Of a stretch of DNA of 64,000 nt, positions 52,004 to 57,464 are shown piece by piece. Each line of letters starts with the position of its first letter. Position 1 is the first letter of the stretch. The notes beneath the pieces were generated by a model. It was not told the origin of the DNA, did not search any database, and worked only from the letters and a program-made list of their open reading frames with translations. This stretch comes from Salisapilia sapeloensis CBS 127946 (lineage: Eukaryota; Protista; Oomycota). The stretch is taken from NCBI GenBank assembly GCA_023334545.1, contig JAADVB010000022.1:1-64000 (forward strand), read 5' to 3'. The position numbers were made by a program, and so were the translations under genes.

Positions 52004-52760
52004 ATGCTACGTCCACTTACAGCACGAATGATCAAAACGAACAGTAGCAAGGTCCACTCCATTTTCAGTCGATATGCACTACCACGCGATCATCTCTAGA
52101 CCAAATTTTTAATCAGTCTAGAAAACACCGTTCTTGCATTGATCACAGCGAATGTTTGGGTCACAATGTAGTGGTTTAATACTTAAAAGTCTCGCGCTCT
52201 AATAATGTATTGGATGCTAATGTATAGGATGCTCGATCATGTTAGGACCTCCGCTGGGCACATGAACAAAGGCCGCTACTATGTCTTACGCACCCTTGTC
52301 TTCAACCGCATGGACTGCATGTACTTACGAACAAGCATGGCTTTCCTCTTTTTCAACTGGGAAATCTGCTACCTTATCGGATCCCACCGCTTCCTTGCCT
52401 TGTACCTTGGCAGCGGTGTCTTGTCTAATTTTACTCCTGTCATGAAGCAAAAATACAAGAGCAATTGCAGATCAACTTGAGAGCAAGTGGGGTTGTAAAT
52501 GGTATTATAGAAATCAGTGGGCTCCTATTCTCTCGCTCAAAACGGCACATTTTAGGCATTGCCTCCATGCGCGCTGAAGTGGCAGGCGTTCTGGCTGTCG
52601 ATCGGGTTATTTTGCATGGATATTGGATAAACGATACAATTTCAGCTACTTTGCTCATCTTAGTGGTGCTCTACTTGGAGGTGCACAGTATCTTCACCTC
52701 CGTCACGTTGATCGCTTCTTGAAAAATGATGCAAGTAAAAGTTTGATCTGGTACTCGAAC
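52004..52760 (+). pseudogene. Rhomboid (PARL-like) protease pseudogene
   Basis: VLALITANVWV, then after a probable intron GRYYVL..VF, IGSHRFLALYLGSGVLS, RASG (from GASG) and AHLSGALLG. An in-frame stop at 52097-52099 and two frameshifts (about 52465 and 52620) break it. Confidence 0.7.
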
Positions 52761-52776
52761 CTTCGATATGTTTACT

Positions 52777-53552
52777 TTATTTTCGAGTTCGAGCTTTGTA
52801 CTCGGCTGAAGTTTCCATCTTCTTCCCTTGCTTCCAAATCCCCACTTTCTTCTTTCGAGCTTGCGCTTCAAGCTTGTCAAACTTTTCTTGTTGGCCACCG
52901 TACACCGCTCCAGCCTGTCGATAGACATGCGCAAGCCCGCTTTTAAGCATCTCTTCTGAAACATTGCGACGGAATGGAAAGATGCCGTAATGAACCATGC
53001 ACACAGCTCTCGAATATTGGTCCTTGTGCAACAATGTGAGCTTAAGCTTACGATTCTGCAGCATACCTTCCAAAAAGGTACGAGCCTCGTCTCCGTATGG
53101 CTGTCCTGCATTACCAAATTTCGCCGTCTCTGGAGTGTCTATTGCATGCCGGTGGTAAGGACAATAGAGCAGTAGTGTGTCTGTAACGATGGATTACCGA
53201 TGGCAGCGAGACGGATCTGTAAAGTGTGGTCACTACGCTTACCATCGTAGGAGCCAGGTCCACGCCATAGAGGCAAGTGGCGTACACGAAAGGTGTCACC
53301 ATCTGTGCAGTGAACGTTCACTGCACGGATGGTAGCTTCTTGATTAAACAGCTTCATCGGAATGTCATCTACTGTCTTGTATCGACGGAACGGCTGACGG
53401 AGTTTCGGAATCAACAGCCCAAGGCAAATTCCGCCAGCAAAAGCCCCCCACAATGGAGCTTCTGATGGAAGATCACGGAGCAGCTGATCTTTGTGTTTTA
53501 AGACAGCATCTCGTTGCTGAGCAGATATCGGAAGGCTGTCGAGGACACCCAT
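52777..53552 (-). CDS. LCL3: Staphylococcal nuclease (TNase)-like endonuclease, LCL3-like; one intron
   Basis: TDGDTFRVRH, IRLAAI/DTPETAKFG.GQPYG, KDQYSRAV, EEMLKSGLAHVYRQAGAVYG and EAQARKKKVGIW; catalytic D/R/D/E/R residues retained. Short hydrophobic segment near the N-terminus. Confidence 0.88.
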
Positions 53553-53799
53553 TTACAATAGCGAACTGAATGTCTATTTCGTGTCCGGATTATTGAAGTT
53601 GGGGAGATCTTATGCGGTTGCAGAGCTAGCCATTGTGGAGCAACGCCACGTGCATGAGATGGCGATGACGCTCCTGTAACAGTCGATCTGTCCTGCACAT
53701 AAATTGGCGATGGAGTCGATGTAAGAAGTTGGCATAAAGAACTGAAGGATCGACGTACTCATTGAAATGCATAAAAAATAAACTTTCCATCTCCTACTC

Positions 53800-56095
53800 T
53801 TCGCTTGACCTGGCATCGGGAACCGGCGTTGAATTCTTGATAGTCACGCCATCATGCAGTTGCATGTAGCCTCCGTCGACGTCAATCTAACGATAGAAGC
53901 GAGACGTTGTATCAGAGGCGATCGCAGGACCATGCGTGTGAAAATCGTCTCGTTTCGGATCTCTTCCGGGCTTCTTACATGATAGAACAAGGTACTTGTC
54001 GAGCAGCCCAATCTTTTCTGAGGTTTCAGTCATCCACGATAGATCCCAGACGTCTGGGGAATTATTATGATTTGCAAACAGCAAAAAGCTTGGGTCTGAC
54101 GGTCGAAGACCACAGATGCGAGTTGCTGCAATCACGTCGTGCGGTAGGTTACGAGTTTGAAGTAGATACTATGCAGTTTGTACATTGAACGCAGGTAGCT
54201 ACCATCACCGTCGATATACCCAGCCAAAACCTGGATTAAAACTTCACAGTCTGCTTTCAAGTATACCTCAGATGTTCCGCCATATTTGTTATCTAGTACG
54301 CGCAGTTCCTTCAGTCCATCGAGAACCAGATTTCGAATGGCGTAACGATCGCGCGATGCGTCTTCCGTCGCTACAGTGCACTCATATCGCGTGTTATTGT
54401 TGGAATTTTCTTCTGGGAGCGTTCGTGTGTGAACTTGAACTCGAAGTTTTTGGATCCCAGGAGGTAGGGCAGCATTCACATCCTCAACATATTGTTGCTG
54501 TCATTGAACAAGCTCTTCGTCATTCGTGCAGATACTAGGTCAGCCTCTGGCTACAATCGCTAGCCAGAGTCCAAGGTAATAAGGATCTACTAGCAAGTCT
54601 ATCTCTTCGTGAGGTCTGACGCGCTGTTCGTTATTGCTAGTGTCATCCTCTAGATCTGTCACAAGACAAAGATTTGATCCCAAAAGTCCTTCAGCTGCTA
54701 GCTATCCGTTTAAAGTACCCTTCTTGGGAGGCCACTTTTGACCCAATTTCCCCGTAGTCTCGGCGATAATATTCCCTTCTAAAGCCATTTGCGGATCGAC
54801 TTCATGTGGAAGGATCTCTTGGAGTATGTATTGTAGTCATTTGGGTTCGTACATGTCTTTTGAGCGAGTCGACTTAACCGGCAAACCCTCCACGCATTGT
54901 GTTTCCAACACTTTTGCTGAACTGTCATATTCTTTCCCGGTGCAGTGAAGTACTTCCCTCTTGCATTTCCTACTTTAAATGCTGAATGGACGGAATGCAT
55001 GTACAGTTCGTGTGTGGGTTATGACACAACCGCCGCACCTCACGACTACTTTGATCATATTTACGACCATTGACATGAAGTATGATTAGCGTATCCGATG
55101 CACATGTGAAAGCGTCGCTCTAACATTGTTGGAATTTGTAGTAGTCAACGTAGCTTCCTTGCGCCTCGAAGCTCTCTCCCAGCGCTAAGATATTCACTTC
55201 TTGTTCATAATATCCAAACAGTACGCCATCAACATTTAAATAACGGAGCCTTTTCACCCCTGAAATTGATCGTACTTTCGTAGGCTCTTGGTAACCAGTT
55301 GCAGGCAAATCGATTGAGGTTTGCGCGTCTTCCTTTTCTTCACCTTGCGTGTCAGGATAGTGTAGATAGCAGCAAAATGGCTTTTTCAAAAGCGTACTCA
55401 TGGCGAGCACGCAGGGAATGTAGTACCAACGACCAGAGTCGGCACACGGGATGATGACGTCGTACTCGTGTCCGAGAGGTTGCTTGTCATCTGAAGAAGG
55501 TGTAGCGTCGAGATCAACTTTAAAACCCTTATAGGAGCAACGGTAGCATTCAGCTATTCACAGCGCGCATATAGTACATCAAGATTTTCCATTGAGGCAA
55601 CCTCCGTGCATAGGTTCTCCACAATGTCCTTGGCATGTCTTCACATCAGCGTTCCCGCCTATTTCAATGTCACACTTGGCACAAACGATGCCTTCCACAC
55701 TCTTTGTCGTACGACAGTGCTCCTGGTATTGGACTTTCGGACTAACGTGGTCGAAACTCGTTGCTTGCATCTTCAGTCATATGAGATCAAATGTGGTGTC
55801 AATCAAGACAAGATCCAATCTTTAACCTAGAGTGCGATGTAGGACTGGAGAACTTGTTAGGTCGGATGCAATTTTTATGTGAGCAAAGCAGAGTACGATA
55901 GACTGCTGCAAGTTTTCAAGCTGAATGCTTGTGACTATTTTTCAATGAGCAATCTGTACTTACTTGTGGAAACCTCGAACCTATGGTAACCTAGAAGAAC
56001 AGCAGCGATAGAGTCTAGATAGAAGACATAGATAGGCAAAGATCCAATGCACTACCTTTTTGAGATCCTTCAGCAGCGCAAAGGTTTTCGTTTCA
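53800..56095 (-). pseudogene. Decayed gene: tandem PHD-like zinc fingers fused to a VMA1/HO-type intein (Hint + dual LAGLIDADG homing endonuclease)
   Basis: Block A-like GYQEPTKVRSISG..NVDGVLFG (from 55296), B-like YYKFQQ..FTCASDT (about 55110), C DPYYLGLWL (54587-54561), D NKY..VYLKAD, E QVLAGYIDGDG (54227-54201), H-like LPHDVIAATRICG and F/G FYR*IDVDGGYMQLHDGVTIKN-S (ending 53833). Upstream in frame: CAKC..CQGHC..HGGC..CTIC and CYRC..GRWYYIPC..FCCYLH. Several stops and frameshifts. Confidence 0.75.
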
Positions 56096-56204
56096 GTAGA
56101 AAATCAGTACAAAGTAGATTATCGAGATAGTCTGCAGGATAGCACGACAACTCTAAAACGGTAACCCTGAAACCTTTAAGAGACGCGGTCAGTAGACGCC
56201 TCCG

Positions 56205-57464
56205 ATGCCAAGTATCGAAGAGTCTACGGATATCTGGAGATTGGTGGAGAATCGAGTCATCGATGCGACCCCATCGGCAGCAGAACATGGCAATCAGAAG
56301 CAGAAAGTTGAGGCGAAGGATTCGTATACTCTGTTTGTCGGTTCACGTGGTGCTGGCAAGTCGTCTCTGATAAGCACCTTTCGAAATGCTTCTAAAGGTA
56401 TGTACGTCCATTGTAGATGAGCTACATTACTACATCAATATTTAAATGATCTATGTCTCTAGTGGAAGAGATCAAGCCAACGACGGCGCTCGATTATGCC
56501 TTCGTGCGTCTGAAGACGTCCAACAGACCGCTCGTGGCTCATATGTGGGAGCTTGCGATGAACAATTGTGTCGGTGATATGATTCGAGTTCCGTTAGATG
56601 AAGATAGGATTCTCAACGGAGGCGTTGTCATCGTACTCGATCTTTCAGATCCAGGCGACGTCGTACCAAATCTTGTGAAATGGCTTCTATTGCTCTACAA
56701 GGTCGTTCAGGACCTGTTGAAAGCACGTGAGAAGCGATCTGCTACGGATAAACTCGTTGTTGAGCGCTTGCGTATGTCAGCTGGAAGCAAGTTTGGCAAC
56801 GATCATCCAGACAAGTCTGAAGTAACTCCATTCCCCATCCCTCTTCTTATTCTCGGGAACAAGTTTGAGACTTTTCGAGATGAAGACAGTGCCAAGCGAA
56901 AAGGAATTATCCAAGCTCTGCGGTACTTGGCGCATGTGTATGGAGGCACTTTACTCCTCACGGGCACGAAAGATAAAGCTATGACTACTCAATTTCGTTC
57001 TATCATGAAGACTTTTGCATTCCCAAGCACTGCTTCCACCAGTTCCAAACTGACGAAAGAGGTCGATGCAAGCAAACCAGTGTACATTCCTGCGGGCTCG
57101 GACAGATTGGAAGATATTGGTATGCCTAAGGTAATCGGTCGACGTCAAGATGGCTCCAAAGATGAGCATGAAGAACGTGCGCGACAGTGGAAAAAAGTTT
57201 CCAGTGAGTACTATGTTCCGTCTGGTACTGTCAAAGACAGCGACATAGCCGTCGAGGATGAATTGGAGACCAAGGCCACGGATGACCAGGAGCAGTTTCC
57301 AGAACCCAACATCGATCGCATTCGTCAACAAAAGAGGTTTTTATCATACAAAGTTTCATGAAACCACATGAATACTAACTTAAAACTGCTTTAGAGAGGA
57401 ATTGCTTCGATATCGTGACCAGCGTCGCAAGTCCATGGGCAAGCGACTTCGATCCGCTGGATAA
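56205..57464 (+). CDS. DYNC2LI1: Cytoplasmic dynein-2 light intermediate chain 1 (retrograde IFT); 3 exons
   Basis: IWRL near the N-terminus, P-loop-like VGSRGAGKSSLI, KPTTALDY, AHMWEL, LDLSDP, PFPIPLLILGNKFETF, LRYLAH.YGGTL, IPAGSDRLEDIG and FPEPNID..R.QK/EELLRY. Confidence 0.88.

Follow-up and report, generated by a model that had tools for sequence, protein, structure and literature searches.

How did a sequence with the layout of a fungal intein come to lie, broken and without exteins, between two ordinary genes of an oomycete chromosome? The question is raised by a stretch of 64,000 nucleotides from Salisapilia sapeloensis CBS 127946 (GenBank assembly GCA_023334545.1, contig JAADVB010000022.1, positions 1 to 64,000 of the forward strand; hereafter the window), in which three-frame translation of the minus strand from 55296 down to 53833 yields a near full-length intein-like unit of about 488 codons. 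Hint blocks A and B come first, followed by two LAGLIDADG motifs and then by Hint blocks F and G, which end in Asn followed by Ser; the reading path uses three frames, and its strings are interrupted by stops. We conclude that this relic is a dead gene for a decayed intein-type homing endonuclease whose last functional state was most probably free-standing and splicing-incompetent, a reading to which we give a probability of roughly 0.75. In architecture, a LAGLIDADG nuclease with two motifs, of the PI-SceI/Hom_end class, interrupts a Hint splicing fold; in kinship, the relic adds a dead member to the intein-like endonucleases of PI-SceI class and stands nearest to the lineage of inteins housed in fungal chitin synthase (CHS) and glutamate synthase (GLT1) genes. 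The relic DNA makes no protein today.

An earlier note, made from the letters alone, had proposed that a hidden, near full-length VMA1/HO-type intein with a dual LAGLIDADG endonuclease resides here in an oomycete nuclear genome, where automated annotation would miss it. Every peptide string it quoted is found in its place on the minus strand by three-frame translation, and the canonical order of Hint blocks and two LAGLIDADG motifs is borne out by the full-length alignment and the colinear profile matches described below. The mechanical list of open reading frames (ORFs) indeed contains only fragments of the unit, the longest of 115 aa. The relic occupies most of a 2.5-kb interval that runs from an LCL3-like nuclease gene (minus strand, ATG at 53552) to a gene for the dynein-2 light intermediate chain (D2LIC; plus strand). 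The D2LIC protein matches those of Pythium, Lagenidium and Phytophthora best, at 58–63% identity to these peronosporalean oomycetes and about 50% to Saprolegniales, which confirms that the DNA is of oomycete origin. The relic sits in a chromosome of this host, a fairly divergent member of the oomycetes.

A colinear, full-length match to an intein family

The identification is carried by a family profile hidden Markov model (HMM) of 467 positions, built from extein-less Lipomyces copies together with GLT1 and CHS inteins and run over the 2557 stop-free pieces that six-frame translation of the window yields. The three best matches of the whole window are minus-strand pieces of the relic that follow the order of the profile: 55123–55557 (E 2e-2, profile 4–55), 54543–54701 (E 2e-3, profile 205–221), and 54135–54500 (E 4e-16, profile 243–349), the last being the best-preserved stop-free piece, of 122 aa, which holds blocks D and E. 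When the same search is confined to the region, the next two pieces are block B (profile 61–88) and block F/G (profile 450–465), again in order, and the five colinear pieces together span profile positions 4–465.

Aligned to the DNA by dynamic programming that tolerates frameshifts, the family consensus scores 241, against 37±4.5 (maximum 55) for 60 dinucleotide-preserving shuffles (z=46). The alignment covers positions 5–465 of the 467 and window 55281–53839, with 130 of 439 aligned codons identical (about 30%). The reading path contains 6 stops in 480 codons, as compared to 13–32 in the six fixed frames of the same span, and it shows the coding-type pattern GC1>GC3>GC2 of the host genes.

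The 122-aa piece can also be recognized on its own. Protein-language-model (ESM) features match it to LAGLIDADG_3 clusters (0.95, 191 shared features), and phmmer against 1.84 billion representative proteins returns only two Lipomyces proteins besides a repeat artefact. One of the two, P0002 (742 aa, XP_066751920), aligns through residues 245–351 with 38% identity over 105 aa (E 1.3e-6). The artefact, P0001 (732 aa), was nominally the top match (E 5.7e-12, 10 stretches); it is a tandem repeat of about 71 residues whose match fell on the frame-shifted tail of the query piece, and it is not a relative.

What the relic has kept and lost

Read from its N-terminal end, the relic opens with the Hint block A region, GYQEPTKVRSISGVKRL..., at 55213–55296 (minus strand, as are all features of the unit), which lies within the piece matching profile 4–55 and scores E 5e-4 when only the region is searched. 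The codon at the position of the nucleophilic Cys1 (55294–55296) encodes Gly, a register obtained by ungapped extension against the family pattern C/G-LASDTLVRTTTGVKRV. The block B region, AFTCASDTLI, follows at 55072–55113 and is the fourth-best, colinear piece of the region; where the family reads sFTCTPDHRL, the relic has Thr in place of the TxxH His. The first LAGLIDADG motif (block C), VDPYYLGLWL, occupies 54552–54590, and its LGLWL is followed by AIV where the family has GDG, leaving the acidic residue absent.

Preservation is better in the 122-aa piece. Block D reads NLVLDGLKEL...NKYGG...VYLKAD at 54332–54249 and keeps its Lys, while the second LAGLIDADG motif (block E), LAGYIDGDG, keeps its acidic residue (DGDG). 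The exact coordinates of the motif strings are 54239–54195 for LIQVLAGYIDGDGSY and from 54147 onward for LPHDVIAATRICG. After a frameshift near 54160 the C-terminal half of the endonuclease domain continues in another frame, LPHDVIAATRICGLRPSD ... TSEKIGLLDKYLVLSCKK, at 53890–54168 (profile about 360–448), a part that alone is not significant in the HMM search. Hint blocks F/G, IDVDGGYMQLHDGVTIKN and then Ser at +1, lie at 53830–53886 and form the fifth-best, colinear piece. The family C-terminus is ..GGqFQLANRLVV[HCSY]N/C (the slash marks the end of the intein), whereas the relic ends in ..VTIKN/S, with the terminal Asn (53833–53835) retained and Lys for the penultimate His. Some active inteins lack the penultimate His. 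Kept overall are the block-D Lys, the DGDG of the second motif, the terminal Asn and the +1 Ser.

Beyond the Asn there is a tail of 12 codons, STPVPDARSSEE followed by a stop (53794–53832), containing neither Cys nor His, and no C-extein and no C-terminal zinc finger is present there. From Gly to Asn the unit is crossed by six in-frame stops, with lowest window coordinates 55120, 54837, 54702, 54540, 54501 and 53887, and by two frameshifts, near 54975 and 54160, as placed by the frameshift-aware alignment.

Nearest relatives and phylogeny

To which inteins is the relic closest? A search with P0002 recovers many extein-less copies in several Lipomyces species, inteins within glutamate synthase (P0028, P0031, P0037 and P0038) and an intein within chitin synthase (P0036). 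P0002 itself begins M-C-LASDILVRTT..., has both LAGLIDADG motifs, and its intein-like part ends ...RLVVCD/S. The closest solved structure of this nearest family is PI-SceI, the VMA1 intein, with E 5e-11 over the endonuclease domain; the 122-aa piece of the relic has no PI-SceI match even at E<=10 in a phmmer search of the PDB. The VMA1/HO-type label of the earlier note thus holds for the broad class (Hom_end/LAGLIDADG_3, PI-SceI) and fails for the nearest relatives, which are the fungal CHS/GLT1 inteins and the Lipomyces copies.

With the relic read with X at its breaks, BLAST gives its top scores to the fungal family (62–90 bits), and soil-metagenome loci with chitin-synthase inteins reach 67–69 bits. 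Inteins of phages, bacteria and giant-virus metagenome-assembled genomes score 50–65 bits, a generic similarity in blocks D and E. An origin from a giant virus or phage accordingly lacks specific support, the best metagenome loci being fungal-type chitin-synthase inteins.

We inferred a maximum-likelihood tree of 44 rows under LG+C20, including 15 bacterial and phage inteins and leaving out VDE, HO, WHO and Prp8 inteins and any inteins of the host genome itself. The relic joins the fungal CHS/GLT1/Lipomyces clade with support 100/99 against the 15 bacterial and phage inteins, and within that grouping the whole fungal clade is its sister (95/88); its end branch is very long (3.99), and it is not nested among the Lipomyces copies. 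Best bit scores, profile matches and tree grouping all agree in assigning it to the CHS/GLT1 clade, and tblastn finds no CHS or GLT1 sequence nearby that would mark an insertion at the homing site of those genes. The 1.84 billion representative proteins gave no backing to the idea that intact relatives might survive elsewhere: only Lipomyces sequences matched, in a library that apparently does not include this genome's proteins (the exact D2LIC ORF was not returned).

Free-standing or embedded in a host gene

Was the unit once embedded in a host gene, as the fungal inteins are, or did it stand alone? In the family, GLT1 inteins are flanked by ...MMRK/C and N/CHLNTCPVG, and CHS inteins by ...LGNT/C and HN/C. 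A tblastn search with GLT1 and CHS exteins finds no match flanking the relic, and the in-frame region upstream of it contains no Pfam family. Because no exteins are detectable, Gly stands at position 1, and both the block-B His and the penultimate His are missing, the relic is not an intein in the strict sense. It stands in intergenic DNA flanked by the LCL3-like and D2LIC genes, a free-standing placement like that of HO and WHO, and most extein-less Lipomyces copies likewise have Gly at the Cys1 position (M..SQG-LASDT).

The six stops correspond to about 0.085 neutral substitutions per site since inactivation, a rough figure with a Poisson range of about 0.03–0.19. Since at such a divergence four of the six key residues are unlikely all to have been lost only after inactivation, the splicing residues were probably gone while the frame was still open. 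As far as residues and placement can tell, the relic was most probably once a free-standing, splicing-dead gene of the HO/WHO/Lipomyces kind.

Its history would then have run as follows. The ancestor would have been a free-standing, splicing-incompetent gene of the same kind as yeast HO/WHO or the extein-less Lipomyces copies, possibly carrying an N-terminal Cys/His-rich extension. Its LAGLIDADG domain would have made a site-specific double-strand break, with the Hint halves serving only as a structural or DNA-binding scaffold. Once its target or its selfish advantage was lost, decay would have set in and accumulated to roughly 0.085 neutral substitutions per site.

It is possible, if unlikely, that the relic was never free-standing and is instead a fragment of a bona fide intein-bearing gene, either a segmental or retro-copy of a resident intein host or a copy with exteins that were cut short when it arose or have decayed beyond recognition. 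The terminal Asn and +1 Ser are kept as in real inteins, the in-frame region of about 158 codons before block A could be an N-extein, and copying of this type does occur, as some Lipomyces copies retain decayed remnants of the GLT1 C-extein. However, tblastn detects no GLT1 or CHS extein similarity near the relic, just 12 codons follow the Asn, and the Gly at position 1 together with the loss of the block-B and penultimate His exceeds what about 8.5% neutral divergence would lead one to expect. The 122-aa piece, moreover, matched no VMA1- or Prp8-type protein among the 1.84 billion representatives, this genome's own proteins apparently not being included.

The upstream Cys/His-rich region

The frame of block A can be followed upstream through 55297–55770 on the minus strand to an ATG at 55770, giving a possible N-terminal extension of about 158 codons. 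It has two stops, as compared to 6–13 in the other two minus-strand frames, a signal in stop counts and weak patterning. Its Cys/His-rich stretch (window 55537–55770, minus strand) has the pattern C-x2-C-x13-C-x3-C-x4-H-x2-C, followed by CTIC and CYRC, with a PHD-like spacing. Pfam is blank on the extension, and PHD clusters of the Atlas match at just 0.84–0.88 with fewer than 150 shared features, such that a PHD identity is unproven, a lead rather than a finding.

An intriguing idea, which we regard as doubtful, is that the ancestor was an independently arisen oomycete counterpart of HO/WHO, namely an escaped CHS/GLT1-like intein fused in frame behind a PHD-like zinc finger starting at the ATG at 55770 and thereby aimed at a new chromosomal or chromatin target.

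Breaks, transcription and antisense RNA

Could the breaks be assembly errors, or be bypassed in RNA? The stretch is represented in one DNA run and four RNA runs, and contigs of the four RNA runs, from the same organism and a different study, were compared with the window over 52600–57400. Between 53595 and 55836 they show zero differing letters and zero indels, and because all four RNA runs match the window letter for letter, neither the stops nor the frameshifts stem from assembly error. RNA word depth is 3–12 over 53595–55836, versus 30–70 over the LCL3-like neighbor, and drops to about zero at 55820–55980, which argues that contaminating DNA does not explain the coverage.

Four joints occur inside the relic (54573>54639, 54938>55006, 55079>55142 and 55079>55145), all of them plus-strand GT..AG. 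They define three introns of a plus-strand antisense transcript: one of 65 nt at 54576–54640, its joint seen in three RNA runs; one of 67 nt at 54940–55006, in run X5; and one of 62 or 65 nt at 55080–55144, with alternative acceptors at 55141 and 55144, in runs X3 and X2, respectively. No CT..AC joint, as expected of a minus-strand intron, occurs within the relic in these contigs. The controls behave as expected, the minus-strand LCL3 intron appearing as CT..AC and the plus-strand D2LIC intron as GT..AG, and the former is recovered in all four runs. Unspliced contigs also cross the breaks and the joint sites (e.g., X4 record 15, 53763–55153).

The relic locus yields a low-level, spliced, apparently non-coding plus-strand RNA. 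This low-abundance RNA runs antisense through the relic over window 53595–55836 and has the three short GT..AG introns. A plus-strand protein gene was considered and discarded, as no ORF of the plus strand exceeds 125 aa after splicing. Depth declines from about 53.6 kb toward 55.8 kb, a profile in keeping with divergent transcription from the LCL3 promoter region, the plausible source of this RNA.

That the gene is still alive, with introns or recoding removing or bypassing the breaks to give a functional intein-like nuclease, is close to refuted. Transcription in four RNA runs and the short introns of this oomycete (59–67 nt here) lend it a certain appeal, but every joint in the relic is of the plus-strand type, which also disposes of introns rescuing the minus-strand frame, and none is CT..AC, even though the adjacent LCL3 intron was recovered in 4 of 4 runs. 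The unspliced X4 contig spans the breaks, and these lie inside conserved, aligned blocks, with stops 10 and 23 codons after LGLWL in a stretch whose length is as in the family. Poorer still is the proposal that isolated LAGLIDADG-like motifs arose by chance in non-coding DNA, for which one could cite the shortness of such motifs and a Pfam blank on every piece, and which is refuted by the window-wide HMM search (E 4e-16 for the central piece), the five colinear pieces from profile 4 to 465, the z of 46 over the full length and a reading path depleted in stops.

Evidence to set against a free-standing relic

A number of observations weigh against reading the relic as a dead, free-standing endonuclease gene, and they bear on its identity, its transcription and its former mode of life.

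First, the conventional domain and structure searches give little. Pfam reports no family at E<=10 on any of the nine stop-free pieces. Among the intact relatives, Pfam works near threshold as well, missing the Hint halves and finding only Hom_end PF05204 and LAGLIDADG_3 PF14528, and these not in every member; since even these relatives score just near threshold, the blank on the relic reflects a limit of sensitivity. The earlier note had staked its claim on a significant Hint or LAGLIDADG profile hit; with Pfam that test comes out empty and would wrongly reject the relic, yet with the family profile the match is significant over the full length. With the 122-aa piece as query, phmmer finds no more in the PDB than a marginal LAGLIDADG match (E 0.34), to an engineered protein derived from I-CreI. 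An AlphaFold2 (AF2) model of the same piece, from a 15-row alignment, has a pLDDT of 60 and a pTM of 0.43, and Foldseek finds it no PDB match at E<=0.001; an outcome of such low model confidence is uninformative rather than negative. Taken one by one, blocks A, B and F/G are weak; colinearity and the whole-length score are what support them.

Second, the RNA contigs carry no strand information, and sense (minus-strand) transcription of the relic may also take place.

Third, the residues and the tree leave room for other histories. The assignment of Gly to position 1 depends on a register drawn without gaps through five dissimilar residues. The relic branches outside the free-standing Lipomyces copies, so a Gly shared with them would be convergent at best. 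Because the first LAGLIDADG motif lacks its acidic residue, the enzyme may have ceased to cut DNA before the frame was first broken. And the case for a free-standing gene is in part one of absence of evidence, as short or highly decayed exteins may escape tblastn.

Comparison with known intein-derived systems

The fungal CHS and GLT1 inteins, which have been grouped as one cluster (Green et al. 2018, PMC5784728), share with the relic blocks A, B, C, D, E, F and G in order and a similar length (about 488 codons versus 467 profile positions). They differ in sitting in frame inside CHS or GLT1, starting with Cys and ending ..HN/C, whereas the relic has no such exteins, Gly at position 1, Lys for the penultimate His and a broken frame, and belongs to an oomycete rather than a fungus. 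The extein-less Lipomyces genes resemble the inferred ancestor of the relic in being free-standing and dispersed among unrelated genes, most with Gly at the Cys1 position and an end at or soon after the terminal Asn. In contrast to the single dead copy in Salisapilia, they are intact, multi-copy and nested in the GLT1 intein clade, and they lack the N-terminal Cys/His-rich extension that the relic may have.

PI-SceI/VDE (PDB 1VDE, 1LWS) has the same combination of Hint and two-motif LAGLIDADG nuclease (Pfam Hom_end), but VDE is a true intein within Saccharomyces VMA1, with Cys1 and His-Asn, and the relic is VMA1-type just as a broad class. HO and WHO of the Saccharomycetaceae are intein-derived, extein-less, independently transcribed and often pseudogenes beside ordinary genes, which is the concept that the relic shares with them. 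HO/WHO carry a zinc finger at the C-terminus, have lost motif G and have VDE as their closest relative (Coughlan et al. 2020, PMC7282813); the relic has none of these three hallmarks, as it keeps a motif-G-like end (..IKN/S), has no C-terminal zinc finger and is of CHS/GLT1-like lineage. WHO elements also cluster beside FBA1 with duplicated 3' fragments of that gene, while around the relic there are neither WHO-like duplicated fragments of neighbors nor flanking or terminal repeats. The relic resembles HO/WHO in concept and is not a member, in a comparison where HO/WHO sequences are absent from the tree.

Among oomycetes, Phytophthora ramorum has a degenerate intein in a relic of an RNA polymerase like that of African swine fever virus (Goodwin et al. 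2006, PMC1635734), and the literature searched contains no other intein-coding sequence in an oomycete nuclear genome. That intein lies inside a viral polymerase gene, of nucleocytoplasmic large DNA virus type, within a viral insertion; the Salisapilia relic has no viral neighbors, no extein and fungal-type relatives. A 2018 survey of eukaryotic inteins found nuclear inteins mainly in fungi and VMA1 inteins in fungi only, with no oomycete nuclear entries (PMC5784728).

The genomic neighborhood

The LCL3-like (staphylococcal-nuclease-type) gene at 53139–53552 (minus strand) is intact and lies directly downstream of the relic; it is spliced, with a 59-nt intron at 53139–53197, and is the most highly expressed feature of the interval. 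On the other side of the relic, D2LIC occupies window 56205–57361 (plus strand). An oomycete assembly from Logan and that of Pythium brassicae, compared at D2LIC (L001:6251–9068 and L002:6634–9434), both have a D123 gene immediately upstream on the opposite strand; the local gene order of Salisapilia differs, with the relic and the LCL3-like gene in the position of D123. Those two loci have no intein-like sequence and hence no syntenic copy of the relic. A foreign base composition was looked for and rejected, GC being equal to that of the surroundings and GC at third codon positions 0.44, as compared to 0.47–0.48 in neighboring exons.

Relatives in Lipomyces and soil metagenomes

In Lipomyces, the intact extein-less genes form a multi-copy family derived from the GLT1 intein (P0002–P0030; e.g., loci L066:6001–7452 and L067:6001–8343), annotated as 'DOD-type homing endonuclease domain-containing' or hypothetical. 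Some copies retain a decayed GLT1 C-extein after the terminal Asn (CQLNS.., CHLNS..), some have long Ser/Pro-rich tails, and one, P0015, lies between two fragments of a sugar-transporter gene, as if inserted into it. No paper in the literature searched links Lipomyces with inteins in this sense, and the family may be an undescribed parallel to HO/WHO.

Soil metagenome contigs L028–L033 (e.g., L033:803–4894) carry long, intron-free ORFs for class-1-type chitin synthases whose Chitin_synth_1 domain in each case houses an intein of the CHS/GLT1 family. The intein of P0036 sits between Chitin_synth_1 and Chitin_synth_2, an insertion site that differs from that in the soil contigs.

Evolutionary meaning

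As a dead single copy, the relic has no physiological importance of its own, and its interest, which is moderate and evolutionary, is that of a molecular fossil and not of a working element. Almost all known nuclear inteins and intein derivatives come from fungi and a few protists. The relic shows that a PI-SceI-class selfish element reached, or persisted in, the stramenopiles. Should the ancestor have been fused to a zinc finger, living members of the family could persist elsewhere in the genome or in unsampled relatives. In its probable origin as a free-standing gene, it suggests that inteins can leave their host genes outside the budding yeasts as well, and that such events leave behind fossils that ORF-based annotation and Pfam both miss.

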